Of a stretch of 64,000 nt of DNA, positions 3,587-37,251 are shown piece by piece. The stretch comes from Cyanophora paradoxa CCMP329. Lineage: Eukaryota > Plantae > Glaucophyta. The notes beneath the pieces are model-generated. The model did no database searches and was not told the DNA's origin. It saw only the letters and a list, made by a program, of their open reading frames with translations. How positions within the stretch are numbered: the first letter of the stretch is position 1; the number at the start of each line of letters is the position of its first letter. The stretch covers positions 292,457-356,456 of the forward strand of contig QPMI01000104.1 in assembly GCA_004431415.1 (NCBI GenBank). The letters run 5' to 3'. The position numbers were made by a program, and so were the translations under genes.

Positions 3587-6500
3587 ATGGAGCTCGATCC
3601 CGCCCTTCCGGCGGCTGCTGTCGGCCTGGTCCTCGACCCCGCCAGCAACTCCGCCCCTTGGAGCAAGCTATACGCTCTGGACCAGCCTGTCCGTCTCTGT
3701 GTCAAGTGCGTCACTGCGCTGCGCTAACGCTAGCCGTTAGCGTCACTCCCGACCCGTTGCTGCTCTAGTACCGGTACCCCCGTTGCGCGCCTACTTTCCT
3801 GTGTCACCACGATCGTCCACGAACCCCCCCCCCCCCCCTCAACAACCCCCAACACCCGCCATATCATCCATTACACTACCTCAGACCCCCCCCCCCCCCC
3901 CCCCCTGCCACTCGCTTTCCTGTTCAGTGCACCTGATACCCCTACACCGGCCTGGCCCTCCCTCGCCATCCCTCCCCCCCCCTTGTCGCCCCTCCCCCAG
4001 CAAACTTCCATCCCCCCCCCTCCCCCCCCCCCCCCACCCGTCCTTTTCCCATCCCACCCACCCTCGTGCTTCCCCCGTCCCTTCTCCCCTTTCCCGCCCC
4101 CCCCTCCCCCCCCCCCCTGCCACTCGCTTTCCTGTTCAGTGCACCTGATACCCCTACACCGGCCTGGCCCTCCCTCGCCATCCCCCCCCTCCTCGCCCCT
4201 CCCTCCAGCAAACTTCCATCCCCCTGCCCCTCCCCCCGTCCTTTTCCCATCCCACCCACCCTCGTGCTTCCCCGTCCCTTCTCCCCTTTCCCGCCCCTGC
4301 GCCCCCCCCCCCCCCCCCCCCCAAGACACCCCCCCCACTCCGCCCCACCCCACTTCTTCCCCGCCTTGTCCAACCCCACCTCCTCCTCAGTGCAACTCGA
4401 TTAGTGCTTTTCTCAAGTACCCCGGGATTTTGCGGCTCATGATCATCAAGATGCCGTTGCCATACCGCTGCTGCTCCTTTGGCCCTTTCTCCGCATCCCC
4501 CCTCCCCCCCTTCCCCCCACTCCCTCCCGGAGTCGACGTCCCTGCTATTCCTTCAATTTGCCCCTCCCCCTCTCCCCTCCCCCTATCAACGCCTCACCCC
4601 CCCCCCCCGCCCCCCAGGTGCAATCATCCGCATGTGGGGTACGACACCGTTGAGGATCTTTTCAGCGAGAGGATCTGTGGGCATAGCGACGTGCCCGAAT
4701 ACGTGCAGTCGGGGCCGCAGCTTCAGCAGTTGCTCGCCCAGAGGCGCGCGGGGGCCGGGTGGAAGCTGAGGTACGGCTGCGATGGCCTGCTGGTCCTGCG
4801 CAACGTCGGCACCCCGGGCGCGAGCGTCGGCGAGAGCGGCAGCCAGCACACCAGCGCTCCTAGCAGCGAGAGGCAGTATGTCCTCCTGGAGAAACTCGGC
4901 GACGGGTGCTCGGGCAGCGTCTTCCTGGCGGCCTCCCGCGGTCCCTCGCCTCTGGGCCCGGCCTTCATGCAGCTCCGAAAGGTCGCCGTCAAGCAGATGT
5001 CGATCTCTTCGAGTTCAAATTCGACGTGCGTGCTTGACACCGTTGCTTTTCTTACCTTTCTTTAATATTTACTTTGCAGTACTTCCGAGGATCGCGTATT
5101 CGAGCAAGCAGTGCTCGAGCAGCTCCGCCGCATCCGCCTGTGGATGCTACCGACTTTTTGGGAAGAAATTGAGCCCGTCAGCCCCTCCCACCGGCTCTTT
5201 GCGATGACATACTTTGATGCCCCAAGGTGACGCTCTGAAATTAACTATCGATCGTTGATCTCGAACCGAGTATTGAGCATCGACTCGGCATCATTCAGCA
5301 TCGACGATCTCTTGACAGACAACCAAACCTTCCAACCCGAAGAGGTCACCTCGTTCCTCGAGCAGGTGAAGTTGTGCTGCTAAAGAGCATTTAAATTTGT
5401 CTATATACGTTTATTTATATAAATCTTTTGCTGCAGCTTGGACTGTTCACGCGCGCCCTAGATATGCATTATGTTCTAACCGCCCTAGATATGCATAACC
5501 TTAAAACCGTTCATCTGCTTCCTAAGCGTTTCATCGCCAGATGTGCATTCTCTTTTATCGGATCCACACGGAGTCGAACCTCATCCACTGCGACGTGTCG
5601 ACATCAAATGTACTCGTCTGGAGAGCGCCTGATGGGATCAAGCTTCCTCAGTTCGTTTGATTGTTCTTCCTCAGTGCGTTCCTCAACTGGGATCAATTTT
5701 GCTGAAAGCTGTTGTACCTGCACGCAGGTTCATGCTGGCCGACTCTGCCAACAGCGTCCAGCGCGATGACAGAGCGCAAGGAAAGAGACTCGCGCCTTTC
5801 GAGATTGTGCACCTGCGCCCTTCCAAGCTTAAGCTTGCGAAAGTACCCGCAATGCCAACTTTCATTTGCAGTTGCGCGGAAACTCTCAAACTGCTTCGGA
5901 CATGTACGGGGTCGGGACTGTGGCTCTCCAGATGCTGACCGGCGTGCCCTCGGATGCCGCAAGCGTCACCAGGCTGCTCACGTTGTTTGCCCAGTTCTGC
6001 GCTGGTTGCCTACGCAGCTGGCATCCTGATCCTGGAGACCGTCAAATTCTGGCGCGAATTGAGCAAATTCCGAAGCAGCTACGCCGCGTCTTGGCTGATC
6101 TTCTTCAGGTTCGCACTCATGGTTTTAAGCAGATGCATCGTTCGCTTACGTATACCTCATCGATATCTAGTAGCTCTCGTTAGCATTTTAATACAATCTA
6201 CTCTGATTTGAAATCATGTCGTAGGAGTCCGAGGTCCACCGGACCGCGTCGGCAGTGGCGCTGTGGAACAGTATGCATCGCGAAGATCTACGCGAGGATG
6301 GCCTCTGGAATGTTGGAGGTTGGCAGTTATGTATACTTGAGAATATTGAGATTTTATCTGTTTGATTGAAGGTTTCGGAATCAACGCCAGATTTCTTTGA
6401 TGACTCGGACTCAATCTGGGTTCGGCAGCAGGCTGAAGCCATCCGTGAGGCTCTTATCCGTGATGGCAGGCTCCAGGGCGCAATCGATGAGATTGAGCAC

Positions 6501-9500
6501 CTAAACTCCAGCTCCAGCGTCGCCCATGGCCAACCATTGGTGGGCATTCGAGTTGTTATCAGCAGTGGACACGACTACATTGATCGTCACCAAATCGTAG
6601 AGGCGATACGATGTATCGTTGGAGGGGTATGTGGTGAAACTGCATTCAATAATTCCTGAGTCATATTATTCGCAATGTTAAACTCCATATATTCAGGGAG
6701 CTTTTGGACCTGAATTCCCGTATCCGGAAGCGGAAGCATTGCCTGGCAGCACGATCGTCGATTTCAAGCTGCCCAAGACGCTTGCAGATGCACTCGCGCT
6801 GAAGTGCACCGAAAGCAGCATTAAAAAGGGCCTGCAATACTCTGGCTTCATACTGATAAAGATCCAGGGACATCCTGACATCCAAATCACCGAGAAGGGC
6901 ATCGGTCCGTGCTTCGTTTATTTAATTATGTACTGTCTGGTTTTCATTCGTTCTTGCATCGGTTGCCTGCAGACGTTCCTGCCGCGAAGAATCCGCTCGT
7001 GTTCTGGGGCTCCGCCTTTGTCCCCGCTGGCTTCCAGATGCGAATGCTCAGCGCGTTTGAGTTCTGGCAGCTGCAACCATCAGTGTGGACTGATTCGAGT
7101 GCCGCGCGGGCCGAGCCGCAGCGCATTAATGTATACTTCACGTATCTCTCGGGACTGCCCGTCAAACATCTCCGCCGATCTTTTGTGGTGCATTGATATT
7201 CCGAGCTTGAAAGCTTACTTGCAATTGCATTGAAGCCGATTCCTCGCATATGCATGCTCACAAGCGCTTCGATTGCAGGCTGTGCGAGCCGCGGATGAGA
7301 GTCAGAACTTCGATCCCGAATTTGATCCGTCCACTGCCTCTCGGGATGTTATCATGTCGCAACTGCGCGATGGGTACAAGAAAGCTGGCATGGATCCGAA
7401 TTCACGTGCGCCGATTCTCGGCTGGAAGATTCAATGATTGATGGCTACCGCTGAAACGCCTTGACCATGCCTCAGGCATCGACACGTTTCGTTTGCAGAC
7501 GCGAGACCAGTTGGCACAGTTGTACAAGCAGTGTGGAGGAGAAAGACTTACGAATTTCGGGAAAATCACAAAGCGAGATCTCACAAATCGCGTGATTGAC
7601 GTCTTGTTCGGCTCAAGATCTGGAACCATTGAGGTCTGAATCAATATCGCTGTGTACTTATACATCATGTTTTGAATCTCCCTGCAGCAGCCGCGTGCAG
7701 GAGATCTAGAGGCTTCTCCTAGCCCGAGGCCTTCTGGACTTCCGAACCGAGCGAAGTCGAAGTCAATGTTGAGCCAGCTTATCCGGAAAGCGTTGGTTCA
7801 GGTTGGAGACACGCTTGAGCTGCGAGGGTGCACGTGCATGGTAGGGCTCAGAATTCATTATAGCTGAGTCATACTTTCGCAGATTTGTCTAAATTTAACT
7901 TCCGCAGGTCCTCGAGCATGGGCGCGTCAAATTTGTGGATAAGGACGGTGCGACTCACACATCGACTGGAGCAGCTTGGGCCAAGTCGGTCCTCAAGGAA
8001 GCCGGCGCCAAAACCGTACCCCACACAGCCCTGAAGCAGGCGTTTGTGTACCCCGCCGCTGGAGGCGCGCCCATTTCTCTCGCTTCTCTGTACCAGGCGA
8101 CATCGGCTCAAGACAAGATGTTGGAGATCAGCGGCTCGAGCTCAGTTCCGGCAGCTATAGCCATGGACGCTGAGGGGTCTCTGCAGGAAGTTATTCGTCC
8201 AGCGCAGGGTGTGTGGTGTTTGTTTGCATCAATATTCATCCATCTGTTTGCACCTCAAAGGGGATGCAGCATTTGACGTCAAGGAGGAACGGATGGTTGT
8301 GAAAGAAGATACCGCAGCTGCAGCCGAGCCCAAGCCCGAGGAGTTTGAAACAGAGACGGATGATGATGAGGAGATCGATCTGAACAACCCTTTGGTGCGC
8401 GCGCTCATATGCTTGCGTCTATCTGTCGGTTCTCTTTACGTTCTCTTTTACATGTGTTAATATATAAAACCCTTCTTGACGACTGCATTTCGCAGAGTGC
8501 AGCAGTGCGCCTCATGATTCCGCTGGGAAAACTCGACAAGGAGGCTCGATTGCGCCTGCTTGAGCGGCTCAAGGGTGCATGCGGAAAACAGGTTTGCACG
8601 CTCGCCGACCTGTGCAATGAGGAGGCCTTGGGGGTCGCGTTCGACGAAATGGTGTCAGCCGGGTCGATGCTGAGCGTGCTCTCGCAGGCGGTCTGGTGCG
8701 AAATGACACATAATCGCAATTACTTATATATATATATAAATGCATGATAACCGATCGCTACGTTTCAGGGGCGGCTCGGTGAGCGAGGTGGCTCTAGAGG
8801 AAATCGTCCTATCTAAGCTAAGGATATGTGATGGAGACTTGGAGAAGCTCCTCATTGGATTTGGAGCCCAAGCAAAGCAGCTTATTGCAGAATTCGGGAT
8901 TTCAACTGGAAGTATGGGTGCCAAAACATCCGTGCGCCTCCTGTTGTTCTGGGGTGTTGGGTAGATTGCTTGTCATGAAGTCCGCACATAATCTCTCCTC
9001 GCTCACCGTTGCAGACAATGCGAGGCTATCTGTCTGAAGTCCTGAGAGCAATCTCTGACTCCGGCAAGAGACTTACAACCACTTTGTTTGATGACGTGGC
9101 GGCAACAATTCTGGCGCACACGCTGCAATTGGATATCCATGTATTCTCCCGGGTCCGTTCTCTTCTTACCCACTGTACATGTCTTGCTTTCCAACTTTTT
9201 CTGCTCTTAAAGACGGTCACAGAATGCAAATCGCGCAGTCTCCGTGAAGAGCTTTGAGACTGGAACAGAAGGATTGAAAATTCTCAGCAATCGTCATGTG
9301 GTCATCTTGGCACAGAAGAGGCTGAAAAACCGTCTCGAGTACGCTCTCTATCGGGCAAAGAATGTTTTCCAGGATGGTGCGCATGAAGTTTTTGTTTGAC
9401 TTGAATTCGACTTTTCAGAACTCAAAATGCATTCCACAGATGAGTTTGTTGATAGGGTCTCGATAAGCACTATGGAATCTCACGCGACCGCAGCGCATGT

Positions 9501-12500
9501 TCAGAAAGAAGACTTTAAATGGGGTGCGCTTGCACCTTCAAAATTTCCTCTAAATAGTCGACTGATCAGACACTCAGATGTAAAGCAAGGTCCGCGCCTG
9601 GATCACAGTAATCCAGATGATCCTGCAACGCTGGAGGTATGTAATCCTTGCAATCTTTGTCGTCCAACACGTTAGTGAATTGAAGAAATCCGACCGCTCA
9701 GACCCGTATCTCTGAAGATAGAACGCAATTTGTGCTGGTTCGCATAAGTAACCGAACGGGAGTGGAAGAGATCATTGGAACGCAGCCAGTTCTCCGTAAG
9801 CGGCAGAAAAAGATGACGACGGCTTTGGATGCTGCATGCATCCGGGACTACTTGCGTGAACTGCTCCAACTTGATTCTCAAAGCATTGGTGTGCAACGCC
9901 TATCAAAGCTTCATCTGCAATGCTAATCATTTGTTCAGGGCAAGAGAGAGTGTTTGACCTCGTCCAGAAGTTGAAGGACGAGGCGATGGATGTTTTCTCG
10001 TGTGGAAAAGGCACTGGTGCAGAGAATTACGTCGAAAACGCCGAGAATATTCGAGAGATTGTGCGTTCCCGTTTTGATGCAAGCGATCGTTGACATCGTG
10101 TATTGATGCGAGCGGCAGTTGACGAGCGGCATGGCAGGCCCCAACTCACCCATTGCCGAACTCATGCTGCTTCGCGTTTTCTTGGTGGGTTACACGAAGT
10201 CTGGTATGCTCTCGCGCTCAATGCTGTGAACTCTCGAATTATGCCTAGCGTGACTTTTACGAAGGCAAATCAACGTTGCTGTCGAGCCTTCTGTACAGCG
10301 GCATGCCTTCCGCGGAAAAGTATTCTCGCTTGATTGGCAGAGTCAAAGAAGTTTTGGGGGAACGCATCTGCTGGCACCCCGCCACATCTGACGTGCGCAT
10401 GCGCTTCAATCTAGATATAGAGATCGCAAGAGATGATACAACCGCAGTTTTATGGCTTCGTGAGTGGCGCGACGCTGCCGGATGACCATGAGCAGAAGAT
10501 GAGAGCGCTGGAGGAAGTCGGCTTCAAGGCAGCGGCTGCAGCGGCGGCAGCCAGTATATCTATTAGAAGTGCAGACGTTGATGGCGATTCCAGCTTCATG
10601 TGGCAGCTCATGCAGAAGCTCGAGGAGCGGGCCGGACCCGCATTGAAGGACAAGTTCGTCCGCGGCGTTCTTCTTCCCGCAATGGACGTGAACGCAACAA
10701 CAAGGTGGGGCACCTTGCGATCTCAACGTAATCGTTGATCGTGATCTGACTTCACTTAATTTGCTTGAACAGTGTGTCCGTCTTCGCCAAGCTGTCCCCC
10801 TTCCCGTACTGCATCGTCTCCTTCATCACCGAGGCCGAGCACGAGAGAATCAAGGTGGAGGCGTTGGAAGCGCTAGACAACATTCAGCAAAAGAAGAAGG
10901 CGAATACGAAAGGGCGCGGGAAGCGCTCCATGTACGACGCCGAAGATTTAGATGAAGCCGAGGGAGAGCCCGGATCTGCTGATCAACATGAGGAGAAAGT
11001 TCTGCATGCTCTCTCGATGGTGGGCAAGGAGGGTCTCGTCAACGCACAGGGCAAAGGCTACGACCAGATCACGTGAGTGGAACTTTCGCTACGTTATAGT
11101 ACATCTTCAGACCTTCCTCCTTACTGCTTGATAAGGCCTGCCGATCTGGAGTTCGACGAAGAGATCGCCGAGATGAAGCGCCTCTACGGACGCAACCTGA
11201 TCTATGTTCCAGGTGATTTGGTCGCTCCGTCTGGCACTGAACGACGGTGTCTGACGATGTCTGACTTTTTTTATTGTGCAGGGACCGAGAGTCGGGATGA
11301 CGCCCTGTTCAGCCTCCAGAAGACGCTCGGCCTCTTCACCACGAACGGGATTCGCAGCTGCTGGGGTCTCGTCAAGAGCGCCGAGTTTGGAGTGCCAAGC
11401 AAAGCATGCGACGGTTTTCTCTTCGTCAGTTCCACCCTTTGCCCGAAATTTCGGCCCCTCTGACGCAATTATGTTTTTCTCAGTGCGATTGCGTTGGCTC
11501 TAGCAGGATTGATACCGTCAGAAGGGCAGCTGCGGCGCATTCGGAGTCAGGCGGAGAGATCGACGTCCTGCTTCACGTTGTGGTCCATCAGAACACGCCG
11601 TCAGATGTCTTCCCCGATCTGAATGGCCCTATCCGCGCTCTCATCCTGAATCCTGAAGACCACGCGGTGAGGCTACATCGCAGCCCGCAACCCCTAATAT
11701 AACGTCCGTGCATGCACTGCGGCAGGTCGTGTTGGCCTACGATGCTCGCAACGGGAAATCGTCGAAGGGAGAGATCTCCGAAGAATACGCGAAGACGCTG
11801 GAGTCCGAGGTGGAGCAGCGCGTCATAAACACCGAGTGGCGACCGCGGGTCTCCGAAATGATTCCAGATGTTGAAGAAGGCGCCACAGACAAAGACGCCC
11901 CCCACATCGACGAGGAAGCAATGTGCGAGCCCCTATGATCACCTTAATTGGACATGCGAGCCTACGTATACGTAGTTTTAATGCAAATGGTTCCACAGAA
12001 TGAAACGTTTTTTCTTCGTCCCTTACTGCGCCGCACCATCATTCATGAAGGCGCAAGCAAAGGGCACTGGAGAGGATCCGGATGACAAATTGGAGAAGCC
12101 CAGGCTTGCTGCGCTCTGCCAGAAACTTCGAGATCTGCATGCCGACATCGCCCGGCGCCGCGTGCGCAAACGATTTCAAGACGAAATATAATCCAATGTC
12201 ATTCAGAGCTTTCGCCTCCTCTATCACGTGCGTTCTGAACATTCCATTGCATCTGCACCTTGCACATTTAATTAATTTGCGATCCATTTAACTTAAGAAG
12301 TTCACATGACACTGCAGAGCATCACACTGCAGACGCAGCCCTTCTCCGCAGAAGACCGCCGGCGAATCGATCAAGAACTCCAGCAGGCAGAGAGGCGGCT
12401 GCGCGAGACAGTGCAAGCGTTAAAGAATTTGGGCTTCCGGGAGCTCTACGACGCGATCGAGCTCTGCGAGGAGCGCATCCGTTCCCTCGTCCTCGGTGCC

Positions 12501-13849
12501 TACTCGCGGCTCGAGGTCTGCAATCGTGATTTTTTAAATAAGAGAAAGGTTTGCTTATCGCTATCTCCCTTTAAATTATCACTACCTTCTCTCTCAAACT
12601 CGGAACTTCTCTCACATGTCCATACGTGCCGAATGCAGAAACTTCTGGAGAAGTGCAGCGAAAAGAGCACCGGAGTGTTGGAGAGGATCTTCAAGGAGTG
12701 CAAGGAGCCGTACTTGTCCAAGGGCTCCCGCAGGCTGCTGCAGCTCCTCAAGGCTGAAGAGCCCGAGAACGCGCCCCTCTTCGCGTGCCTGTTCGGCGAT
12801 TTCCTGAGCAAGCTTCCGACTAGCCTCGTGAGCCAGCTGAAGGCACAGTACGCCAAGGTGCTGTCGAAGGGGACGGAGGCGGACCCACGGCCGGCCAGCA
12901 TCCAGGCCCTCCTGGAGAAGCGGCTGGCGCTTGACAAGCTTGAGTACCGGGGGCAGAAGGATGATTCGCCCCTCGTCAAGAAAATGGCATCGCGTATTCT
13001 GAAAGACACAAAGAAGTTCGCTCAATCCTTTTTCGTCTACTCTTCTTTGAGCTGATCTAATGGCTTTGCACCTTAGGACGCTGCAGGAGTCCATCAACCG
13101 GTACTTCGACATGGAGCTCCCGTCCAAGCTCGACAAGTTCATTGGCACGACACTGAAGGAGGCGTTCATTGGCACACTAAGGGCGGAGCTTGAGTACTAC
13201 CTTAAGAAAGCGATGGTAATTAAATATTGCAAACAATTACAACGACCAAGCTTCTTCTGGCTTTAATTTCCCTCGAGCTCGCTCTAATCATGATCCTCGC
13301 TGTGCAGAAGAAGAAGTTGAACTCGGAGCGATACAATGCGCTTCTGCAGGCCATGGCGGATCCCTGGCCGGGCAGCGAGAACACGAGCTACGAGAAGTCC
13401 ATCATCAACGTGTGCGACAAGGTCAGCGATGTTGTGTACGGTTGTGTACGGTCGCACGATGTCCGGTTAGAAGCTTAACTTGTCTCTACAGGTTGAAGGC
13501 GAGATCGCGAAGCAGTTCGGCAAGTTCAAAACCAGTATCCCTGAAGGATTCCGCGATATTGTTCTCGCTCGGGTTGAGGAGCTCGCGAACACGCGAAAGA
13601 ACCCCATCGCGGACGTGAACTCGGACATCGGCGCCAAGCGCAAGGTGATCATGGAGAGGCAGTGGCAGCACCTGATCAAGCTCCTTAATGTTGTTCTCGA
13701 GACTGCACAGAAGCATGATCTTGTGACGTACGTGAACATCGCTTTTTTGCATCCGATCGCGAGACGGCCGCAGTTGATTAATACGGCATCACAGGATCCA
13801 CGATCCTGTTTACGACGCCTTCCTCGACCTCCGAGCGCAGGGCACCTGA
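3587..13849 (+). CDS. Giant multidomain protein, copy 1 (kinase / TRADD-N-like / HeH / RAMA / pseudo-OTU / NUGGC-like dynamin GTPase); has an in-frame TAA at 12189-12191, so truncated or pseudogenised
   Basis: Spliced exons give LGDGCSGSVF, VAVK, IHCDVSTSN, LADSA, SDMYGVGTVALQMLTG (kinase); MLSQLIRKALVQVGDTLEL...TGAAWAKSVL (RAMA-like); VFLVGYTKSG|KSTLL, LLPAMDVNATT, WGLVKSAEFGVP, CDCVG (dynamin-like G1-G3). Ends ...DAFLDLRAQGT-TGA. Exon order matches copy 2. Confidence 0.8.
3895..4320 (+). repeat. Two tandem copies of a ~212-bp C-rich unit inside the long first intron of copy 1
   Basis: CTGCCACTCGCTTTCCTGTTCAGTGCACCTGATACCCC starts at 3905 and again at 4117, with poly-C tracts between. Confidence 0.9.
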
Positions 13850-14770
13850 TCATGAGCCCGATTCCTAACTCAACGTTTGACGTTTACTGGTCTAGCTAAG
13901 ATATCAATCTAGGATTCGAACAATTTTGACGATTATTTCGAGTCTCGGATGCGTCTCTACAAACTGTTTGCTTCTCTTGTATGTTTAACGCTTGGCTGCT
14001 TTCGGCTGCATCTCAGATATCGATGTAATTATAATATTGATATTTGATATTGCGATATCTAGATATTGAGTAGAAGAGATGTTTAGACCCCCTAATGTTT
14101 AGCTTGCCGAAGCGGATAATGTTTAGAAAACCACACGGCCCTGGGACGCGCGCGGGCCGCGGCCGGGCGCGTCACGGCGTATATACGTAGCGCCGTGGCG
14201 GGGCAGGGTCGTTACAGAGCCGGGGCTTATAATTATAGCTAGCATTATAGCTCAGCGGCTAGAGCGCAGTGAAGCGAAGAAGGATTTCGATTAAAATATT
14301 CGTCGAGCGTGATGCGAATTAGTGGGGAAGCGGGGGCGGGTCGCGGGGCGATGCTCCGGTATACGTAATCATGAGGGGCAGAGCGGATCGATATCATGCG
14401 AAGGGCGGGCTTCAAATTCGCACTCCGGTCCTTTTCAAGGCGTCTAGGGGCGGTGAAGGTCGACGAAATCACAGCCCCTCAGATTTTGGATACGTATACC
14501 GGACCGCGCCTAGGAGGAGGCCTAGCTTTATATATAGGCCTAGGAGCTGGGGGAGGCCTGAAAGGCCTAGGGTCGCAGGGGCTGATGCAGCACGTAATTG
14601 CAGCGGCCGAAGCTAATGAACACGCGGCAGCCTGGGGCGAACATGTACAGGCTCCAGATTCTAGCTAGAAGCGAATTCGAAGAAGCACATTCTACGAATC
14701 TATGAATCCATCGAAAATCTAGGAAAAGATCTATAGCTAGATATAATTGGCTGTCATCATGATCAGGACA

Positions 14771-17700: not shown

Positions 17701-17814
17701 TCCCGCGAAACTCCCCGCGCAGGAGGAGCAGGTCGAGTTGTGGAACGCAGCGCAGAACGCCGCGCCGTCTCCGAGGACCGCGGGCAGCAGCGCAAGCAGG
17801 AGAAGGACCCGCAT
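14771..17814 (-). CDS. Type I membrane protein: signal peptide, Cys-rich PSI-like domain, single TM helix, low-complexity tail
   Basis: MRVLLLLALLPAVLG signal peptide; CAAFHNSTCSSCAGSFAGCAWSPCSRTC fits the PSI pattern; TM AILGTLGGVAALAILAVGG followed by KLYVRRLAK. Exact 3' end uncertain. Confidence 0.7.
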
Positions 17815-19230: not shown

Positions 19231-19481
19231 GGGCCGCCCGCCGCCGCCGCCGCCGCGACGCCCGCTTAAAAACGCTGTGATTATAACTAGTTGTATCTGC
19301 GTCTTCTGCTTCTTCTTTGAAACCGAGGTGTATTCCCCCCCTTTCAATCATAGCCTAGTAGTGTACCCAGCAGCTGCTTTGTGCGCTTCGCGTGTACTTG
19401 CAAACGGCTGCATATTGAACGCTGACAAACCCCGCGGCCCTAACGCGCGGGGTACTACTGCGCTGCCAACGGGCCAAGCCA

Positions 19482-21817: not shown

Positions 21818-22163
21818 CGTGCCTCCGCCTGGGCCTCCAACGCTCTCCTCAGACCCACACGGGGGGGTACTACCAGAGACGGCCCAAACCTCTGATCGGC
21901 CTCCCCGCACTAGCTACCAGCCCCGAGGCGCCTCAGGAGCGCCCGAACGCGTATCAGCGGCGAGCTTATGCCGCGGATGCAGTCTCCGAGTGGAACGCCA
22001 TCGAACTGGCTCTCGAGTTTCGTCTAGCTCAGCGACGCGAGGCGTAGCCATTCTCCAGAGGCTCTAGGCGCAGCCGATATTGACCGGCTGCGCCGCGCAG
22101 CAGCAGCGGCGGCAGCAGCAGCGGGCGGGAGCGCGCACGACACGCCCGGCATCTAGAGCCGAG

Positions 22164-25100: not shown

Positions 25101-27311
25101 ATCCTAAGATCTTGTGCATCCGCATCTTCAGCTTCTTACCTTGCGCTCACTCCGCAGCGGGCGCTGGCGGCCCAGGAGGCGGCCTTCGGGCTGAGCCCCC
25201 TCGCGATCGGGACCTGCTGCGCCCTCGCCGTCACCTACAGCCGCAGGGGCAACGACGGCGCCGCCGAGGCGCTCCTCAAGGCGAGGCCGCCGTACCCCCC
25301 TCCCCCTCCCTCCCGCCCCTCCGCTCACCCGCCCCGCAGCGCGCCCTGGCCGCCCTCGACGCGGCTGACGGGCCCGGGGCCTCCGAGGGGCGTCCCGAGG
25401 AGCTACGCGCCGCGCAGGTCCGTACCCCCCCTCCTTAACTCCCGCGGCACTCGCGCGCCCCTAACGAAAGGGTCCTCAGGTGAGCTGCGCCTGCGGCCTG
25501 GGCGAGGTCTACTTCCACCGGGGGGAATTAGCCGAGGCCGAGGCCCTCTTCAGGGTACCCCCGATCCTAACAAGCTTCCAGCGTGCCCCGCTCAGATAGT
25601 TCCGCAGAGGGCGCTGGAGGTGCTGGACGCGGGGTCGGCTCCCGAAGGGCCCCGATTGGTCTCGGCGCTGGCCGCCCTCGGAGCGACGCTCGCCGAGCAG
25701 GGGCGTGCGGCGGAGGCCGCGCCCTTGCTCCGGGTACGCCTTTCTCGCCCGCGCTCACCTGAGTCAGACGAGCTGAGTGGGTTTGTCAGCGGGCGCTGGG
25801 GATGCAGGAGTCGGCGGCGGGCGCCGATCACCCCTCCTGCGCGCCCGTCGCTGAGTCCCTTGCCCGCGGTCCGCCCCGGCGCCGCCCCGAACCGCTCAGA
25901 GTCTTCCGAATGTGCTGACGCGGTAGCCTGCAGTCCTGTACTCGCTGGGGCGGGCGGAGGAGGCGGACGCGCTGTTCGAGCGGGCGGCCCGGGCGCGCGG
26001 GGCGACGGGGGCCGCGGGGGGTACCGAGAGCATCGACGCCGACGTATCGCTGGACCAGGCCCGCACGCCGCCCGCCGCGCTCCTCCTCCTTCCCCCTCCG
26101 AACAGATCCGCAGCTGATGGGCTCGTACCCGGCCCCAGTCGCGGCCCCGGGGCCCGACCACTCCGGCGTACCCCGGACAGGGGACGATCCCCTCGCCGGT
26201 ACCCGCCCTCGTGTTCCCCCCCTCCTTCCATCCCCACCCCCGCTGATCTGAGGAGGGGTACAGGGGAGGAGCTGTCGCGGCTCCGGGCCGACCTCGAAGC
26301 GGTGCGGTACCCCTCTCACTCACTCCCCCTTCCCCCTCTCACTCACTCCCCCTTACCTGGCCGAGCCGGCGGGTGCGGGGTACAGGTGCGGTCGGAGGCG
26401 GCGCGGCTCTCGGCGGCCCTCCGCGCCTCCTCCGCCGCCCAGTCCCGCCTCGCCTCCGACGCCGAGGTACCCCCCTGCGCTTCATCCCCCCGCCCTTCCC
26501 GACGGGGTACAGGTGGCGCGGATCGAGTCGGAGAGCGCGGGGCGGGGGGCGCGGGAGGCGCGGGAGGAGGCGGCGCGCGCCCGCTCCGACCTCGCCGCCG
26601 TGCTCCGCTGCCGTCCCTCCGGCGCGCCGGCCTCTGACAGCGCCGCGCAGGCGGTGGCGGAGGCGGAGGGGATGCGGAAGCGGCTGGCGCAGGCGGAGAA
26701 GGCCGCCGAGGCCGCCCGGGCCGAGGTCCGCCAGGGGCCCGGCCTGGCGCCCCACTTTGTAGCTGGCTGACCGATCGGCTGCGCAGGCCGCCGCCGCCTC
26801 CTCCGATGCCCTCCACGCTCGCCGCGAGGCCGTCGCTGCCCGCGCCGCCGCCGCTGCCGCCGCCACCGCTGGTCCCGCCGGGCAGTCCGCAGGAGAAGCG
26901 GTCAGACCCCACCGCCCGCCCCCTCCTTTCTTCCTCCCCGCCCGACCGACGCGGACGGCCTCGCAGGGGGCGCTGCGGGCGCGGGTGGAGGCGCTGGAGG
27001 CGCGGCTGGCGGACAGCGCGCCCGTCGGCCCCGCAGCCCTCGCCGGCCTCTCAGCGGCGGAGCTGCGGCGGGCGCAGGAGCGGCTGGCGGCGGGGGCTGT
27101 GGCCGTCGCGTCGGCGCTGGCGGAGGCGAGCGCCGCCGAGGCGCGGGCGTGCCTCGCGTGCGGGGCGCGGCCGCGGGCGGTGCTGGCGCTGCCGTGCCGC
27201 CACCTCGCCCTCTGCGGCGAGTGCTTCGAGGGGCCCGGCGGGGCCCGCTGCCCCCTCTGCGGCCTCGCCCCCGACCCCGCCGCCTCCGTCAGGGGCGCCC
27301 TCCTGTCTTAG
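22164..27311 (+). CDS. Kelch repeats / TPR-like / coiled-coil / RING-HC protein (putative E3 ligase); could be two genes
   Basis: Kelch-like AVYGGTALDGRALDDLWLFEVGTSAWR and AVFGG...DTWLYLFEEVRW; TPR-like LGEVYFHRGELAEAEALF and LGATLAEQGRAAEAAPLL; C-terminal CLACGARPRAVLALPCRHLALCGECF...CPLC then TAG. No stop seen between modules, but the splicing was not fully traced. Confidence 0.65.
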
Positions 27312-27341
27312 AGATTCGGTAAGTTTTTAGCTCCAAGGTTC

Positions 27342-27427
27342 TTCAGCCTTTAGCTACCTAGCGCCAACGGTTCTTTAGCTTTCAGAGATCAGGTCCGACG
27401 GTTTTTCAGCCTTTAGCTACCTAGCGC
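27342..27427 (+). repeat. Short direct repeat (TTCAGCCTTTAGCTACCTAGCGC x2) in the 3' region between convergent genes
   Basis: Seen directly at ~27342 and ~27405. Confidence 0.8.
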
Positions 27428-27518
27428 AGCCTGGCTACACAATCGATCATGACGTGAAAAATCATATTTTAAACAAATACATGAATTTGTTTTTTGCACT
27501 TTTTCGGGGAGGCGATGG

Positions 27519-30500
27519 CTACAGGGTACACTCCGCACGGAACTCGAGGTAGGCATCGTGAACGGAATCGTCGATCCTGCGGAAGGCGTGCGAATCGCTT
27601 AAATTTACAAAACCGCAAATGCATATGGGCTGGGCTGTGCACGCACGTTACGAGCTTGTTCTGCTTGGCAGTGTTGAACACGTGGTCAAGAAGGTTAAGG
27701 AGGAGCTGCCATTGGATCTTGATGACGGCCTTCCGCTCGGCGCTGAAGCCCTTCAGATCCGTGATGGGGTTCGCGCGAGCGTTCGCCAGCTCTTCAACCC
27801 GAGAGAGAACGATCTCGCGGAAGCCCTGTGGAATGCTGGTTTTGAACTTGCCGAACTGCTTCGCAATTTCGCCTTCAACCTGCAGAAAGACAACAAGCAT
27901 GGATTGACTCTCAACCTCGCATTGAGAAACGAAAATCAGCACGTGCTAACCTTGTCACAGACGTTGAGGATTGACTGCTCATAGCATGTGTTTTCGGTAT
28001 CTTGCCAGGGGGCAGCCATGGTCTGCAGAAGCGCATCGAAGCGATCCGTGTTCTTCTTCTTTTTCTGTGCACACATGCAAAAAGCAGAAAGCATCAGCCA
28101 ATGAAAAGAACGACAAAGGAAAAATGGAAGCTTGCCATGGCTTTTCCGAGATAGTACTCTAGCTCGGAATTGATGGTGTCAATGAAGGCATCCTTGAGCG
28201 TGGTGCGGATGAATTCGTTCAACGCAGACGGGAGGTCGGAGTTGAAGAAACGAGCGATGGCTTCTTCCAGGGTCCTATGAGCAGTTTAGTGGCAAGATAC
28301 ACAAAGACAACGTGGCAGAAGAACAGACCGCTTTGTGCGCTTGAGTATGCCTGAGGCAATCTCCTTGACACGGGGTGTGTCGTCATCCTGTCCGCCGTAA
28401 GCAAGCTTGCCCAGCATCAGGCGCTCCTCCAGGTATCCCTTGATGCTGATCGGGTCCTTCTCGATGCCCTCTGTTAGAACCTTGGAGTACAGCGTCTGCA
28501 GCTGGTCCACGAGCGTCGTTGGCAGTCTCGTCAAGAAATTCCCAAACAAGTACTTGAAAACAGGCGCGTTTTCACGACTGGGCGAGTTGAGAAGCTGCCG
28601 AAGCCGGCGCGAGTTGCGTTCAACGTAAGGCTTCTTGTTCTCCATGTAGATTTTCTTGTGCTTTTTGTCGCTGGACTGCTCCAGCAGATCCTGTCAAACT
28701 AATGCATTAAAAACTGATGCGTTTTCAACAATCCAATGGTGAATAAGTGCACCTTCTGCCTTTCGAAGGAAGCGCGATTGCACACCTCAAGCCGCGAGTA
28801 CGCGCCTAGAACGTGAGATCGGATGCGCTCCTCGCACTGCTCGATTCTGTTGTACAGCTCACGGTAGCCCAGAGACTTCAGCGCCTGCAGCGTGTCCCGC
28901 AGGCGTCGCTCTGCGTTCTGAAGCTCCTCATCGATACGCTGACGTTCGGATGAAGAAAGCGGCTGCAGCTGCAAGGTGATGCTCTGCACAAACAGCGCGT
29001 GAGCATCTACCAAGGTGACTACCATATTTGTGCAAACAGTGGAACAAACGCACGTCGTAGAGAAGGCGAAGGCTGTGGAGAACGATGGTTTCTACTTCTT
29101 CTTGAAAGCGAGCTCGAAGGCGTTGCTGGGCGATGGAGTCACGCAGCTCCCGCAGCTTCTGGCAAAGCTGTTCAAGCTGCGGCTGCTTCAAGTTCGCTTC
29201 CTCGCCTGCTCCCCTCGCCTGCGCCTTGAAGTACGATGGCGCAGCGCAGAAAGGAACGAAAGAGAGCCGATCCATGCTGCGAATTGTTAGGGCATAAAGG
29301 GGATTTGCGCATTGCTTGCAAGTTGAAAAGGGCTCGCACATTGCGTTCTCGTCGATGCTGGTGGTCTCCATAGCCTCATTCTCGATTTCTGGAATCATGC
29401 TCAAGATCACTGGTCGCCACTCCGTGAATTTGACGCGCTGTTCGACCTCATCTTGCATCACCTTCACCCGTGCGTCCGTCATTTCTTCCTTGGTTTTGCC
29501 ATTGTGTGCGTCATAAGCCATGATGACCTGCCCTCTCGAATCAGCCATTTCGAATTCGCAGTACCAGTGCGAGAAACTCACAGCGTGATCCTTGGGCTTC
29601 AGAATGAGGGAGCGGATCGGCTCTGTAAGGTCCGAGAAGACATCGGATGGTGTGTTTTGGTGGCCCACGACGTGAAGCAGGACGTCGATCTGGCCGCCCA
29701 TTCCCGACTGCGCCGCAGCTGCCCTTCTGACCGTATCGATGCTGCTCGAGCCAACACAGTCGCACTGCGCAGCAATTGTTACAAGTGATCGACAGCCTTT
29801 TAGAGGGACCGACTGACAAAGACAAAGCCGTCACATGACTTGCTTGGCACACCGAACTCGGCCCACTTGACGAGACCCCAGCAGCTCCGGATCCCGTTTG
29901 CAGTGAAGAGACCAAGCATCTTCTGGATGCCAAACATAGCTTCTTCCCGATTCTCAGTTCCTGTGCAATAACAAATGTCACCCTTCGCTTCACTTTCGGT
30001 GCCAAACCTCATAAATCAAAGTGGCCATGACCCACCTGATACATACAACAAATTACGCCCGCGAAGAAGCTTCATCTCCGCAATCTCTTCATCGAACTCC
30101 AGATCCAATGGCCTATTGAGGAGTCAAATCAAACGGAGAGCTACGTTATCTATGACAAGAATCTTACGTTATTTCGTCGAGTCTCTTGCCTTGTGCATTT
30201 ACCAGGCCCTCCTTGCCCACCATGGAGAGAGCACGCAGGATTTTCTCCTCGTCCGAATCTCTGTCAAATCCGGTCTCGCCGTCGTACGGAGAACGCTCCC
30301 CGCGGCCCTTGGATTTGTCCCGCGCGAGTCGGTCGCGCGCTTCTAATGCCTCTTCCTTAGCCGTCTCATGTTCGTCTTCGGTGATGAATGAAGTCACACA
30401 GTAGGGAATGGGAGACAACTTGCCGAAAACAGAGACACTGCTCAAAACGTGAGATAAAAAAATGTGCATGTCTCAAAAAGAATGAAATTGACCTGGTTGT

Positions 30501-33500
30501 TGCATTTACATCCACTGCGGGCAAGATAATGCCAGGTTCAAACTTCACTTTCATCACTTCTGAACCAGCTCGCTCCTCGAGTTTCTCCATGAGTCGGAAC
30601 ATAAAGCTGGTGTCGCCGTCGTTACCCTTGCTGCCGCTCGCAGCCAGTGCAGCAACTGCAGTTTTGTGACCGACGTCCGCCAGTACTTTAAGCTTCTGGT
30701 CATGGTCATCCGGCAGGGTTGTGCCATTGATGAAGCCAAAGAACTGTTATTAACAATTAGCAAAGGGTTGCAGAACTTCGGAAGACAACTGCAATTGGCG
30801 TCGGGAAACGCACAGCACAAGTGACGGGATTCCAACGGACACGATCTCCCAACATGTGCTTCACCCTGCTGATTAAGCGGCGGAAATTCTCGACCGAGAG
30901 CATTCCCATGTACAGGAGGCTCGACAACAAAGTAGATTTGCCTGGAAATAATTTAACTTTAAACAAAGGTCATTTTGAATATACATCTGAAAACCCAATC
31001 GCACCGCAGTGCGTGAATCCCACAAGGAAGATCCTAAGAACCATTAGCCTTGAGATGGATATCGAATGGGATCCCGTCAAGCCGCTCTCCAACTGTCGCA
31101 TGGATAAGGCAACATAACTGGTGTAAAAACAATAGATGGATGCACGATTGTGCGGATGGTCTCAGAATTTTCGCCGTACATGTTGCTACCCGCGTCCTTT
31201 TTCGACACAATAACGCCCAGCGTCTCGTTTGCAAGCTTGCAAACGAGATCAAAGGTTTTCTCTTGCCCTGTGCGATATTTCAACATCGAAAACTAAACGG
31301 CCATCGCATTTGAAAGCATGCACCGGCAATGCACGAGTCAAGCTCAAGCAGTTCGTGCAAGTAGTCTCGAATGGACGCAGGAGCCGATGAATTGATGGTT
31401 CGCTGCCGCTTCCGAGGAACAGGCTGCGTCGCGATGACCTCCTCTGTCCCTGTTCTCACACTGGTGCGGACCCATTCGTACTTGGTTCCATCACTACTTA
31501 CACGTGTCTGCAGCGATAAATGAATCTTGGAAGCGATTCACACAGTGGCAGTATCACCAACCGTCAAAAGCGCAGGATCATCAGGGTTCCTGTTGTCCGG
31601 TCGCGCGTCTTCGTGAACATCTGTCGTAGACTTTGCAATTGAGGCGCAAAGAAGGCCTTCAGGCGGCATGCGCACGAACCCCACTGGAAGTCCATGCCGT
31701 GGACAGATTTTGGCTGCACTTGAGATTCGATGGTGCTCTCTGACACTGCATCGGCGCCCTCATCTATGCATATGCGTTCAGAAAGGGTTTGAATTGATGC
31801 TATTTGAATTGAAAGCGCGAACCAGTTGGGACAATGCTCTTGGCTCGCAGTGACCAATACTCGGTCCGGCCCTGTTTCTTGACTTGCCCAAGCATGACCA
31901 CATGATGACGGGCGCCACCAGTCTCGTCTTCCTGCCCCATCGAAGCTTCGTAGCTCTTCACTGCGAGCACACGATTCGAATCCTGCAGAGCTTGTTGGTC
32001 GAATATCTGCATAGAACTGATCATGCAACGAAACGCACCCGGAAGAACACGTGAATGTCAATCTGCAGTGTGTGTGCAAGAATGGTTGCCGCCACATCGT
32101 CGAACAGAGCGGCGTGCCCTCGCTTGCCCGAGGTCTCCCGCATAACGTCTGAAAGGTAGTCTCGGGTTGTCTGCAATAAACATTCAGCAACGATGGCCGA
32201 CTAAAATCTAATGATTGAAAATGCACCGATTGTTTTGGATGTGGGATCCCAAGATCAGTCACCAGCTTCTTGGCTTGAGGCATAAACATGTCGAGTCGTT
32301 CCGCCAAGTCACCCTCACTGGTCTTCAGCTTGGACAGGACAATGTCTTCGAGCGCTGCATTAGACACGGAGCCGCGCCTGCGCATCCGTGTCATTCCCCC
32401 CACAGAATTATCCGGATCAGACGCTCAGCCTACTCGCACCAGACAGCCTGCGAGAGAACTCCCAACATTGATCCAGCTAGCACCATCTCGTCGAAGGCAA
32501 CGCCCAGTGTTTCGTCCTCACACAAGTCGGGAAGTAAGCGGATCGATCTCCCACATGCGTTCTTGAGCCTTGCAAGCAGGCTGCTCCGTGCTTCCGCCTC
32601 GAGATGTCCAAGAGGGATCATAAAACGTGCTGCTGCATTCTGCGGGCGGCCAAGTGAACTCAGAATGGCGAAATCAAAGACAATGGATTGGTCTCTGCAA
32701 GATCGCACCAACGGATTGGCGAGATCAACCTCTGGTTGATCGTCCTCATCATGATCATGATCATCTTGTTCCATGGCTGCCTCGCTCCCAATCTCTTCCT
32801 GTACATCAAAGGCTGCATACCGTTCAGATTACTTGCAGTGCACTTGGCTGCCATATGCATCATTCAATTTGGCAAACTCGCGAACCTTTCGCAGGGGGAA
32901 CTGCGGCAGCGACATCGACATCGTCGACGTCCTGCGAGCCGAAGTCGAGAGCTGCTGGTCCTGAGATGTCCTTCTCTTGAGTAGACGCCGCCTGGTGCAG
33001 AGAAGCGAGAGAGACAGCTTTGCCTCCCGCCATGGGGTACACAAAGGCCTGCTTGAGAGCGGCATGGGGGACAGGCTTCACACCAACTGCTTTGAGAACG
33101 GCCTTCGCCCACGCAGAGCCAGTCAAAATGTGAGCAGATCCGTCCTTGTCCATGTACTGGATGAGCCCTTGTTCGAGAACCTGAAAGTGTTCGAAGTGTT
33201 AAATCAAAGTGTTTCACGTTGCTTTATCTATAATCTAGCTCTTAATTTCGGTTGCACCTTGCAGTTGTAGCCGCGAAGCTCAAGAATGTCCCCGATCTTG
33301 ACCATGTCCCTGATGACCAACTGGCCGAGCATGGACTTGGACTTCGCTCTTGCTTTGGATGCGGACGATGGGACTTCCAGCGGCGGATTCTGTTGATTGC
33401 AAGATCAGCGGCTCGGACTTGATGCGTGAACACGATTCAATAATTAAAATTGTACGCAAGCAGACCTCGTTCACGTCATTCGGGCCCAAGAAGAGTTCGA

Positions 33501-36500
33501 CGAGGAGCTCAATCAGATCCTTCTTCGTAGACCTCTTGAAGTTTGTAGGTCTCCGTCCCGTGCACTGCTCGTAGGACTTCGCCAGCTGTTCTCGAGTGCG
33601 GAGGCGGAAAAGGTCTGGAGAATTGCAGTTTCAGATGATCACGAGCTTTGTCTGAGAGGCTTAATCAGACCTGAATTCATGCCCACAGCCTTGTAGTACT
33701 TCCGCAGCAGCAATATGAAGTCAACTGGAGAAGCATTAGCAACATCACCAACAATTTCCACAGCTATTGCCGGATCAACAGCTTGCATGGCCTGCATGGC
33801 CTGAGTAAGGCCCTTAGCATGAGTTGCAATGCTCCAAAGAGCGAACCATGAAAGCTCGACGGAATGAGCTGCGTGGGAGCTTCGACAGGAGTCTGAAGTA
33901 TGCACGATTGCGCTGCAGCTCTGTTGTCGGATTCGACCACATGGATGGCCGCCAGAATTCAGAAGCAGTCAGCAAATGTCTCTGGAAGCCAGCTGGGATG
34001 AAGGCAGAGCCCCAGAACACGAGTGGATTCACCACGAGAGGTGGTTCTGCGGGTAACAATAATGAATAATTACGTAGACCCGAATTTTACTCATGCTATC
34101 GACGGAAAACAATTAAAAACTACGAACCATCCCCCTTCTTTACAAGAATGATGTGAGGGTGCCCCTCCATCTCCAAGCGAGTGAAACCCGAGTCCCGCAG
34201 GCCATCGATAATGTCAGGATCGGCACACTTCGACGCGAGTGTGTCCACCAGCTTCTTAGGTAACTGGAAATCTATGACGGTGCTTCCAGAAGACGATTTA
34301 GGTTCTGGCGCCTGGAAACTGGACCCCACTCCGTCCTAGGACGATGTCAGAGACGCAACTGTGTTGGTTTCCATCTGGAATGCTAATCAATGACTGACCG
34401 CTCCAATGATGCACCGGATTAATTCAAGTACTTGACGGGGGTCCGAGTATGTGTGGCTGATGCTGAGGATGGCGCGGATGTTTGCCAGCTGCTGCATCTC
34501 GGAGGATGAGCTCGATGCTCCACTTGAGACGGACGTGGCAGCTGTAGGTGCACTGGAGCTGGCGCTGGAGCTCGACGAGCTCGCTACCGACAACGCAGGA
34601 AGGGCCAAGTTGGAGGCTTCGCCGGACTGCATGTTGAGAAGTGCCGAACTGCGGCTCAAAGCCTCACGGACGGCTCGAACTTGCTGCCGAACACAAAAGG
34701 AGTCCGAATCATCGACGAAATCTGTTGCCAGACGAGCCGCTTGAGAAATTGGACGTACGCACATGTACATTGCAAAAATCACCATGTACGAACCGCGTTC
34801 ACGGATGTCGGGAAGAAAACCCTCACTGTGAAGAGACCCCCACAGTTCCACAGCTGACTTGATTCGAAGGATTTCCGCATCCTGCAGGCTATTTAGACAT
34901 CATGCAGATTGATACAACGTGCATGTCGAACCTGGAGAAGGCCAGATAAGACGCGGAGCAACCTCTCTGGAATCTGCATAATTCGCTCTAGAATCCAGCG
35001 ATCGCTGGGATGAAGAGGCGAGCCCTCGCCAGTACGAGCATGGATGAAAATAGAGTGGAGAGGAGAGTGGAGTGATGCTTCTGTGCCCGATTGTACACCA
35101 GTCAGCATTTGGAGAGCCACAGTTCCGATACTGTACTTGTCTGTACTGGTGAATGGTCTTCCACGCACCTAGAGACGGCATCATTTCGTTATTACATAGT
35201 AAAAGCTACGCAGAGACAGTGTTACGCACAAGATCTACAGCCCCGAGTCGTGGAATCGGCACTCCCAAACGATGCTCCCAAGATGGGATCCCCAAACTTG
35301 CGTCGCGCAAATCCTCACGATCACGGCGCAATGTCCCATTTGCGAAATCAAGCACCGCAAATCTGTGGTTGCGTTTTAGGAATTTAATCGAGCCGCGTAA
35401 ATGAGTGAACGCACTGCGGCAGCTTGCCCGTATCCGGTGCACGCCAGACGAGAATGTTCGATGTCGAGACGTCGCAGTGGATGAGGTTGGCCTCCTCATG
35501 AATTCGATAGAATAATATGCACATCTACGGAAACAATCGCATCTGATTCGATTGACACATAGAAGAAGTGATCACCTGTTCGAGGAAAGCGACGACCTCC
35601 TCAGGCGTGAAGGTTTGGGCGTGCTCCAGCAGGTCATCGATGCTGCGTAAATGTGCAAGTTAGGAAGTCGATGGATTGCATTGGGCTTGGCGGTTCAACC
35701 TTGGCGCTTCGAAGAAAGTCATAGCAAGGAGGCGATGCTCACAGCCGTCGACGTCGTGTGTGCCGACGGGCTCGAGCTCGTCCCACAGATTCGGGACCAT
35801 GAAGATGCGAAGGCGGCGGAGCTGCTCGAGGGCCCCGCGCTCGAATGTGTAATCATTGGTGCTGTGGGAAGTATGAAAATGAGATGAGGCGGCTGCGGGA
35901 AGGGGGGAGGACGAACATGAGATGGGGCGGATGAGACTGAGTGAGTGTGAACTGCTTGATGGCGACCTTCGAGAGCTGTAATGAGTTCGACCCTGCAGCT
36001 GCAGGAGACGGGCCGTGACAGGCCGCCAAGAAGACTTTGCCCGAGCGCCCCTCGCCGAGGACTTTAAGGCAGGTGTACCGTCTTAAGCTTCCGCCCCCAG
36101 ATTGGCCGCTGCTAGACTGGCTGAACTCGCCAAAATTTGTCCCTGGATCGCCACGCAGGACCAGGGGGCCATCGCAGACGTCGGAAGGATCGCGATCGCC
36201 CGCGGCCTGCATCGCTTTCTGTTCCGCCCGCCACTGCTGCAGCTGCTTACCATGCTGCACATACTCCGCTGGTGCGTCCGCTGCAGCTGGTGCGTCCACT
36301 GCATCGAGCTGCATGTGAGAAGGCTGGTCCGGCGAGCGAGGCCGCAAGCAGGTCCTTTCATCGATGAGGGCTCCTACAGTGTCTTGCACTTCATGCGAGC
36401 GCTGGCACCTGCAGAGTGGTGTCAGCTATTAGACACGAGTGCCTCGTGAGAGGGAGGAGCGGGGGTTGGGGGGGGGGGGGGTGGGAGGGGCGGGGAGCGG

Positions 36501-37251
36501 GGGGAGGAGGGGGGACGGCGGAGATGGGGGGATGGGGGGGGGGGGGGGGGGGGGGGCAATGGGCAATGGGAGGAAAGGGAGGAAGGGGGGGGCCGGGAAG
36601 TTCTGGCTTACAGCGGCGATGACTCCTTAGCGAGGGGTATAGCAATGACAGTACGAGGGATATAGGAGGGGAGTGCGGAGGGTGGTACAGCGGCGATGGC
36701 TCATTATCGACGAAGATACGAGGGGTATAGGAGGGCAGAGGGTGGGGGGGGGCGGGGGGGGGGGGGGCGGGGGGGGGGGGGAAGAGGGGGGGCCTACGAA
36801 GTTTAGTAGCGCGGTTCAAGTTCAAGGTGCGGTCAGGGCATACACTAATACGCCAGGGGAGCGGGGGATACAGCGGCAATGGCGACGACGGGGGGTACAG
36901 CGGCAATGGTAAGAGACGACGGTACGAGGGGTATAGAGGCGAGAAAGTGGGTATAGGAGGGGTATAGGGGTGTAGGAGTATATAGTTAGAGTGGGTAGTG
37001 GGTTGGCAGAAGGGGGGCACGAAATCAACCCGGGTACATGAAGGAGTTCGGAAGGATCGGGTGGACGAGCGAGTCGGGAGCGGGGGAGAACGGGACGCTT
37101 TGAAAGTCCACTAGCGTATCAGTAGTACGCACTTGACGCAGACGCAAGCCTGCTGGTCCGGATCGAAGTGCGCTTTCCAGGGGGCGGACTCGTTGGCGGG
37201 GTCGAGGACGAGGCCGATAGCAGCAACGGCAAGCGCCGGGTCGAGCTCCAT
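27519..37251 (-). CDS. Giant multidomain protein, copy 2 (same architecture as 3587-13849); no lesion seen in the exons checked
   Basis: LGEGRSGKVF, VAIK, IHCDVSTSN, VLDFA, TDKYSIGTVALQMLTG; TREQLAKSYEQCTGRRPTNFKRSTKKDLIELL; MLGQLVIRDMVKIGDILEL...TGSAWAKAVL; IFLVGFTHCG|KSTLL, ILPAVDVNATT, WGLVKWAEFGVP, CDCVG. Ends ...AYLEFRAECTL-TAG. Confidence 0.82.
36450..37020. repeat. G-rich degenerate minisatellite in the long first intron of copy 2
   Basis: Poly-G tracts with recurring TACAGCGGC(A/G)ATG and TACGAGGGGTATAG motifs. Confidence 0.75.

Follow-up and report, generated by a model that had tools for sequence, protein, structure and literature searches.

Two paralogous genes of Cyanophora paradoxa fuse a protein kinase, a RAMA domain and a probable dynamin-like GTPase: a candidate genome-defense protein

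This study analyzed a pair of genes, termed A and B, in a 64,000-nucleotide stretch of DNA from the glaucophyte Cyanophora paradoxa CCMP329 (contig QPMI01000104.1 of assembly GCA_004431415.1, forward-strand positions 292,457 to 356,456), which is referred to as the window and supplies all coordinates. The analysis revealed that a protein kinase and a large P-loop GTPase are fused in one protein, together with an HeH helix pair, a RAMA domain, and a predicted helical stalk. Each identified domain is known, and the string that they form was not found elsewhere. We tentatively favor, with slightly less than even confidence, the reading that the product is a soluble, probably nuclear, Cyanophora-specific GTPase of the dynamin superfamily that would polymerize on DNA, switch on its own kinase, and serve genome defense. 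Membranes and viral capsids are the known working sites of dynamin-family GTPases; that a member has a kinase and two DNA-binding folds supported by structure suggests that DNA scaffolding is also possible.

Gene pair and spliced message

Two islands near 50% GC coincide with genes A and B in a window of approximately 69% GC. Gene A occupies positions 3587-13849 of the forward strand and comprises 39 exons and 2213 codons, from the ATG at 3587 to the TGA at 13847-13849. Gene B occupies positions 27519-37251 of the reverse strand; its exon model, obtained by spliced alignment, also contains 39 exons, with one GC-AG intron (donor at 28135), and an open frame of 2239 amino acids from the ATG at 37251 to the TAG at 27521-27519. 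A preliminary description, made from the sequence, had placed both genes exactly at these coordinates, on which the start and stop codons fall. It had also called them paralogs with the same exon order, and the comparison agreed: the two convergent genes match exon by exon along their entire length, with identical phases at 38 of 38 introns and 57% amino acid identity. Reading frames, motifs, and hydropathy were examined on the joined models, which also served for aligning A with B. The nonsynonymous-to-synonymous divergence ratio (dN/dS) of A against B was 0.24 overall (0.15 in the GTPase, 0.16 in RAMA, 0.21 in the OTU-like region, and 0.32 in the kinase), and the synonymous divergence (dS) of the split was about 1.4. 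Apart from intron 1, which is at 64-68% GC, the GC content is 44-45% in the introns of A and B (5000-13850; 27520-35900) and 69% in the surrounding window.

The RNA joints listed in gene A number 15, all of them GT..AG. A single spliced contig of 7268 nt (run X3, record 4) covers positions 4800-10702, extending from the kinase to past the G2 motif of the GTPase; its joints are GT..AG and are missing from the DNA run, and its offsets agreed with the A exon model at eight of eight checkpoints. The length of 7268 nt fits the coding sequence of A plus 330 nt of 5' and approximately 290 nt of 3' untranslated sequence. Furthermore, RNA-type runs from several studies contained 0.58-0.59 of the sequence words of 5000-13900, the expected share being 0.57 for the whole mRNA and 0.35 with the 3' part absent. 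This evidence covers gene A and comprises assembled contigs rather than single molecules, from runs that we inferred to be RNA. The X3 contig joins the kinase and GTPase exons of A in frame; this spliced build bears out the earlier prediction of one polypeptide, and the kinase-to-GTPase fusion is real.

In the public EukProt gene models, both genes are split and the kinase is absent: g570.t1 is a 527-amino-acid GTPase fragment of A, and g576.t1 is identical to residues 714-2239 of the B model and carries no kinase. Because the kinase was dropped and the genes were split, the architecture was invisible. The kinase-less g576 and g570 would also suit the alternative that the kinase and GTPase halves belong to two separate, adjacent genes, as would the fact that overlapping transcripts can be merged in assembled contigs and that the contig evidence comes from A. 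Nevertheless, the boundary joints in A are GT..AG and preserve one open frame, and in B the phases agree and the frame stays open from end to end; we give this alternative hardly any credence. In run X8, an alternative intron (7828-7882) inside the RAMA exons of A introduces a stop codon; that splice form would yield a kinase-plus-HeH product or a decay substrate.

Gene A carries an in-frame TAA at codon 1818 (12189-12191, forward strand), where B has GAA. This stop would delete the last 395 residues, which form most of the stalk. Because the sequence past it is as conserved as the remainder (dN/dS 0.24), the stop is either recent or an assembly error. A DNA contig matched A over 4800-10790 with 0 differences in 5,991 bases, a stretch that ends before 12189, and this match makes an assembly error less likely. 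We propose that B is the intact copy and A a recently truncated one. An alternative genetic code was considered for this codon and is unsupported, with one occurrence in 4,450 codons.

Domains of the encoded protein

Domain searches on A and B were run exon by exon, with the EukProt records added where they existed. The large P-loop GTPase domain of A spans 10170-12050 on the forward strand, with G1 at 10188-10272 (split by an intron), the G2 threonine at about 10700, G3 (DCVG) at 11487-11498, and G4 (LAYD) at 11732-11743; the GTPase domain and complete helical stalk of B occupy 27519-31040 on the reverse strand. G1 (GxxxxGKS/T), the G2 Thr, and G3 (DxxG) stand in order and are invariant across four paralogs, and G1 gave a weak MMR_HSR1 match (E 0.001). 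The motifs quoted in the preliminary description (G1, DVNATT, WGLVK, and DCVG) were found in both A and B. The order of G1 to G3 and the weak P-loop profile matches uphold the P-loop GTPase call. The canonical G4, (N/T)KxD, is absent, and of the G4 assigned by strand order only the Asp is retained (MAYD, LAYD, IAFD, and IACD).

The GTPase is probably dynamin-like, an assignment that rests on language-model features (similarity up to 0.93): the top ten of ten ESM neighbors of the region belong to the Dynamin_N clan, at 0.91-0.93. The earlier dynamin-like call is thus matched by these neighbors but not by a Pfam Dynamin_N profile or a canonical G4; Pfam, NCBIfam, and PADLOC searches on the EukProt records gave weak P-loop matches only, and Protein Data Bank (PDB) sequence searches with the GTPase region gave nothing. 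In A, the domain is followed by a stalk of approximately 440 conserved residues (12060-13849, forward strand), of which the first helix was modeled and the remaining helicity is predicted from sequence. The hydropathy scan revealed no segment above 1.5 and no transmembrane segment, including in the stalk, and no PH or GED domain was recognizable. Basic clusters resembling nuclear localization signals are present.

These features bear on whether the protein is instead a membrane-remodeling dynamin tethered to chromatin, at the nuclear envelope or in organelle division, with the HeH as a LEM/SAP-like tether. Dynamin-family GTPases act by default in membrane remodeling. Tetrahymena has a dynamin of the nuclear envelope (PMC7946437), and Cyanophora lacks DRP5B, its outer plastid division machinery being unexplained (PMC6704402). 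The lack of a transmembrane or strongly hydrophobic segment, of a recognizable PH or GED domain, and of an obvious N-terminal targeting peptide nevertheless makes this membrane role improbable.

The DNA-scaffolded reading that we favor draws on two predicted DNA-binding domains. The HeH helix pair (SAP/LEM/Rho-N-like) lies at 7476-7633 in A (forward strand, exon 13) and at 33466-33614 in B (reverse strand). In B, it was modeled at a predicted local distance difference test score (pLDDT) of 84-89 and matched the Rho N-terminus at Z 6.2, with many SAP and LEM entries among the matches; the HeH is a small helical fold, and this match carries moderate weight. The RAMA domain lies at 7760-8120 in A (forward strand, exons 14-15) and at 32970-33330 in B (reverse strand), and in A it is followed by an acidic linker at 8270-8394 (forward strand). 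Among 48,161 chains compared with the RAMA model of B, the top two were the solved RAMA domains of MPND (Z 10.2; root-mean-square deviation 2.0, 83 of 92 residues) and CcrM (Z 10.0), and the next row stood at 6.2. Foldseek also ranked CcrM as the top match, and the Atlas gave a template modeling score of 0.66 to a RAMA protein (PF18755); all three comparisons rest on the one B model. The sequence gave no match to the Pfam PF18755 profile. The earlier HeH and RAMA calls were thus supported at the level of fold.

The accompanying claim that RAMA reads modified DNA fared less well. The RAMA domain of MPND binds double-stranded DNA without base specificity, N6-methyladenine (6mA) left its binding unchanged, and a preference for methylated DNA is disputed even for MPND (PMC9963953). 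The CcrM RAMA domain likewise binds double-stranded DNA without base specificity (PMC6787082). These findings weaken the idea of a modified-DNA reader, and the present family offers a new test of whether RAMA domains read adenine methylation.

The protein kinase domain lies at 4880-6290 in A (forward strand, exons 2-8; VAVK, HCDxxxxN, and DSA for DFG) and at 34830-36080 in B (reverse strand; VAIK, HCDxxxxN, and DFA). The Gly loop, beta-3 Lys, helix-C Glu, catalytic Asp and Asn, and metal-binding Asp stand in order in both copies, and A also shows the subdomain IX Asp. Three separate exon profiles matched kinases in the corresponding subdomains with the subdomain order kept (E 0.002, 0.03, and 1.3), which agrees with the earlier kinase call. 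The exon-by-exon Pfam searches of A and B gave weak kinase matches only; by family, these were RIO1 and Pkinase_fungal, the latter from the catalytic-loop exon (E 0.03). The HRD and DFG motifs are non-canonical (HCD; DSA in A or DFA in B). Judged by its motifs, the kinase looks catalytically competent though atypical.

The weak Pkinase_fungal match is one of the points for regarding the pair as what is left of a selfish element or an offensive effector: a fast-evolving, AT-shifted module of a FunK1-like kinase, DNA-binding domains, and an NTPase that would have been domesticated and would now be decaying, with no role as a sensor; the low GC content of the introns relative to their surroundings, the stop in A, and the pseudogene that A adjoins also suit this origin. 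However, the genes share 38 conserved introns, purifying selection extends to all domains and to the sequence past the stop, scans insensitive to distant or intron-rich genes found no relative in viruses or prokaryotes, and terminal repeats or a transposase were not seen. A relic is therefore decidedly improbable.

An OTU-like region, which we treat as a lead, lies at 8590-9376 in A (forward strand) and at 31823-32560 in B (reverse strand). The lead is an ESM similarity of 0.88 between the paralog P0003 and a giant-virus cluster with PF02338; the helix and strand order fits by eye, in a model with pLDDT below 50. In a by-eye alignment, the catalytic Cys position holds Met or Leu (GSML, GPLL, and GSLF), and Glu, Thr, or Val precedes the His-loop Tyr, so that the domain, if real, would be predicted to be dead. 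The earlier OTU call retains the language-model lead and the motif pattern, whereas profile, fold, and PDB sequence searches gave nothing. Dead OTU domains are known, and ubiquitin binding is not required of them (PMC4654579).

Two further regions precede the HeH. A C-x2-C-x3-H-x14-C motif in the exon translations of the N-terminus (A 3690-4690, forward strand, spanning intron 1) is conserved in B and may be a zinc site. Between the kinase and the HeH lies an alpha/beta region (A 6391-7405, forward strand) that is 40-50% identical to B and for which sequence searches, including the PDB sequence search, gave nothing. A conserved GS-T-x-x-DF-x-LP motif (A 6745-6790) stands within it (A 6391-7187; B 33847-34721); a TRADD-N/SEA-like reading of this motif gained no support from the searches.

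Relatives and possible function

A stop-free stretch of B matched three proteins among 1.8 billion (g576, g570, and g7068), and a further search added g9056; all matches belong to C. paradoxa (EukProt EP00741). The paralogs g7068 (tig00001098) and g9056 (tig00000144) contain RAMA, OTU-like, GTPase, and stalk regions, over which they are 24-35% identical to B; identity between the two paralog subgroups was 24-37%. Neither model matched exons 1-13 of A, and the missing kinase may be a matter of annotation because the B model lost its kinase too. Both paralogs are unlinked to A and B and show GC-rich amino acid usage. No relative outside C. paradoxa was found in searches of the 1.8 billion proteins and of viral, metagenome, prokaryote-genome, and plasmid sequences, which are insensitive to distant or intron-rich genes. 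A recent viral or bacterial origin was rejected on the strength of the 38 conserved introns and the lack of an outside match in these searches. No library family and no paper describing this protein or domain string was found, in keeping with the earlier remark that the architecture was not recognized from any described protein; the view that this is not a housekeeping family is likewise supported.

In the mechanism that we propose, RAMA, aided by HeH in A and B, would grip double-stranded DNA by its backbone, and many copies would line up on a long stretch of exposed DNA, for instance the genome of a giant virus or a mobile element that has been excised. As in other dynamin-family proteins, the stalks would then mediate oligomerization and the GTPase domains would pair. 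In A and B, this would bring the N-terminal kinases together for mutual activation, and the resulting signal would be one of arrest or death. The dead OTU-like domain would serve as a scaffold or as a ubiquitin or chromatin contact and not as an enzyme, and the kinase-less paralogs might coat DNA alone or act as partners.

As the purpose of such a protein, we favor defense over chromatin upkeep, membrane work, and a domesticated relic, in that order. Defense is favored because of the species-restricted expansion, fast divergence, domain gain, pseudo-enzyme, and recent breakage of A. Lineage-restricted expansion, domain gain, a pseudo-enzyme, and recent loss in one copy are typical of conflict genes. 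It is also favored because RAMA derives from restriction-modification systems (PMC4738411), because the C. paradoxa genome contains endogenized elements of giant viruses and lacks a PF01555 adenine methyltransferase (PMC12344493), and because a TIR gene lies between A and B.

Several findings weigh against a defense role, for which the evidence is circumstantial. Gene A is transcribed in uninfected laboratory cultures in several studies, as far as the coded run labels tell; dN/dS is 0.15-0.35 by domain, and no positive selection is evident at this depth; and the other neighboring genes are ordinary. PADLOC gave nothing above noise (LeoBC, E 0.03), and the stop in A weakens the reading further. 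At the level of domains, both solved RAMA structures matched here are non-specific DNA binders, G4 is degenerate and GTP specificity is a prediction, and an AlphaFold model of the GTPase from three sequences reached pLDDT 43 with no usable fold match. The defense claim in the preliminary description is weakened accordingly. Eukaryotic RAMA domains, moreover, are usually fused to deubiquitinase and chromatin domains (PMC4738411), which fits ordinary chromatin work.

The protein may accordingly maintain the cell's own chromatin or genome, with RAMA and a deubiquitinase-type domain on nucleosomes as in MPND/MYSM1, GTPase foci, and a kinase that relays a damage or replication signal. Besides that usual eukaryotic pairing, an acidic tract follows RAMA here as in MPND, where it binds histones (PMC9963953), and vertebrate SLIP-GC is reported to enhance genome stability (PMC12107551); expression without known infection and purifying selection suit this role as well. 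However, core chromatin machinery is normally conserved across species, yet searches insensitive to distant or intron-rich genes found no relative outside Cyanophora, the subgroups are only about 25% identical, and A carries a premature stop. On balance, we regard chromatin maintenance as rather unlikely.

Within the defense reading, a more specific proposal is a foreign-DNA sensor, in which the GTPase would polymerize on DNA and not on membranes, a RAMA domain acquired from restriction systems would tell giant-virus DNA from self in a host without PF01555 adenine methyltransferases, and the kinase would signal. We consider this version quite unlikely. If true, a GTPase-kinase that polymerizes on foreign DNA would be a new type of eukaryotic innate sensor. 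In the glaucophytes, which branched off early in the plant lineage and bear giant-virus scars in their genome, we know of no described antiviral sensor.

Neighboring genes and comparison with known systems

Between A and B lies a small intron-containing TIR-domain gene (18290-19230, forward strand), two successive exons of which align with TIR_2, one with positions 1-27 (E 0.003) and the next with positions 43-77 (E 0.008). It has a Glu at the usual catalytic helix position and is given as context, with no link to A or B shown. Genes read by eye encode a secreted single-pass protein (about 14770-17780, reverse strand), an ABHD17-like hydrolase (about 19480-21850, reverse strand), and a Kelch/TPR protein (about 22250-27300, forward strand); a second copy of part of the Kelch/TPR gene (25840-26257) lies at 708-1122. 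The head-to-head neighbor of B is an aldo-keto reductase gene (37930-39590, forward strand); that of A is a copy of this gene (1250-2880, reverse strand), 90% identical, whose end is truncated and which has acquired three new TAG stops. The reductase duplication seems much more recent than the split of A and B, which suggests that copying or conversion took place at a later time. The interval 48779-50414 holds five copies of a 328-bp unit, 99% identical and with no Rfam match, which represent a recent amplification or an assembly artifact. A 908-bp proline/alanine-rich direct duplicate with 93% identity (51400-52306 and 58724-59630) gave no Pfam match in the overlapping frames tested.

Compared with known systems, the GTPase is nearest to bacterial dynamin-like proteins and fungal Dynamin_N/DUF7605 proteins (PF00350), which are its closest language-model neighbors and share G1, the LP..T form of G2, the DxxG of G3, and a long region thereafter that is predicted to be helical here. 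It differs from them in having approximately 120 residues between G1 and G2, a G4 of a hydrophobic residue, A, Y/F/C, and D, no Dynamin_N profile match, no membrane segment, and four additional N-terminal domains. Its motifs presumably resemble those of NUGGC, which to our knowledge has no RAMA, OTU, or kinase domain. NUGGC/SLIP-GC, too, is a large GTPase that is soluble and has a helical tail, and a nuclear role is proposed for it (PMC12107551); however, no sequence or profile link to it was shown, and one row of the Atlas matches belongs to the fungal DUF7605 group.

In the working model, the protein would resemble Mx, GBP, and Eleos/DynA as a polymer-forming GTPase used against invaders, but with DNA-binding and kinase domains attached; we know of no GTPase of these types that carries either. 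By analogy with ROCO (LRRK) and PKR-type kinases, the kinase would be controlled by a GTPase or by nucleic-acid clustering, although in ROCO proteins a Roc-COR GTPase precedes the kinase, whereas in A and B the kinase lies at the N-terminus and the GTPase is probably dynamin-like. On the DNA-binding side, the fold is that of the C-terminal RAMA domain of CcrM and of the RAMA-nuclease fusions of restriction systems (the PF18755 rows of the Atlas), whose methyltransferase or nuclease domain was not found here. With MPND and MYSM1-type proteins, A and B share the RAMA fold followed by an acidic tract and then a deubiquitinase-type domain; they differ in that this domain is dead-OTU-like rather than JAB/MPN and in that a GTPase, a stalk, and a kinase are attached.

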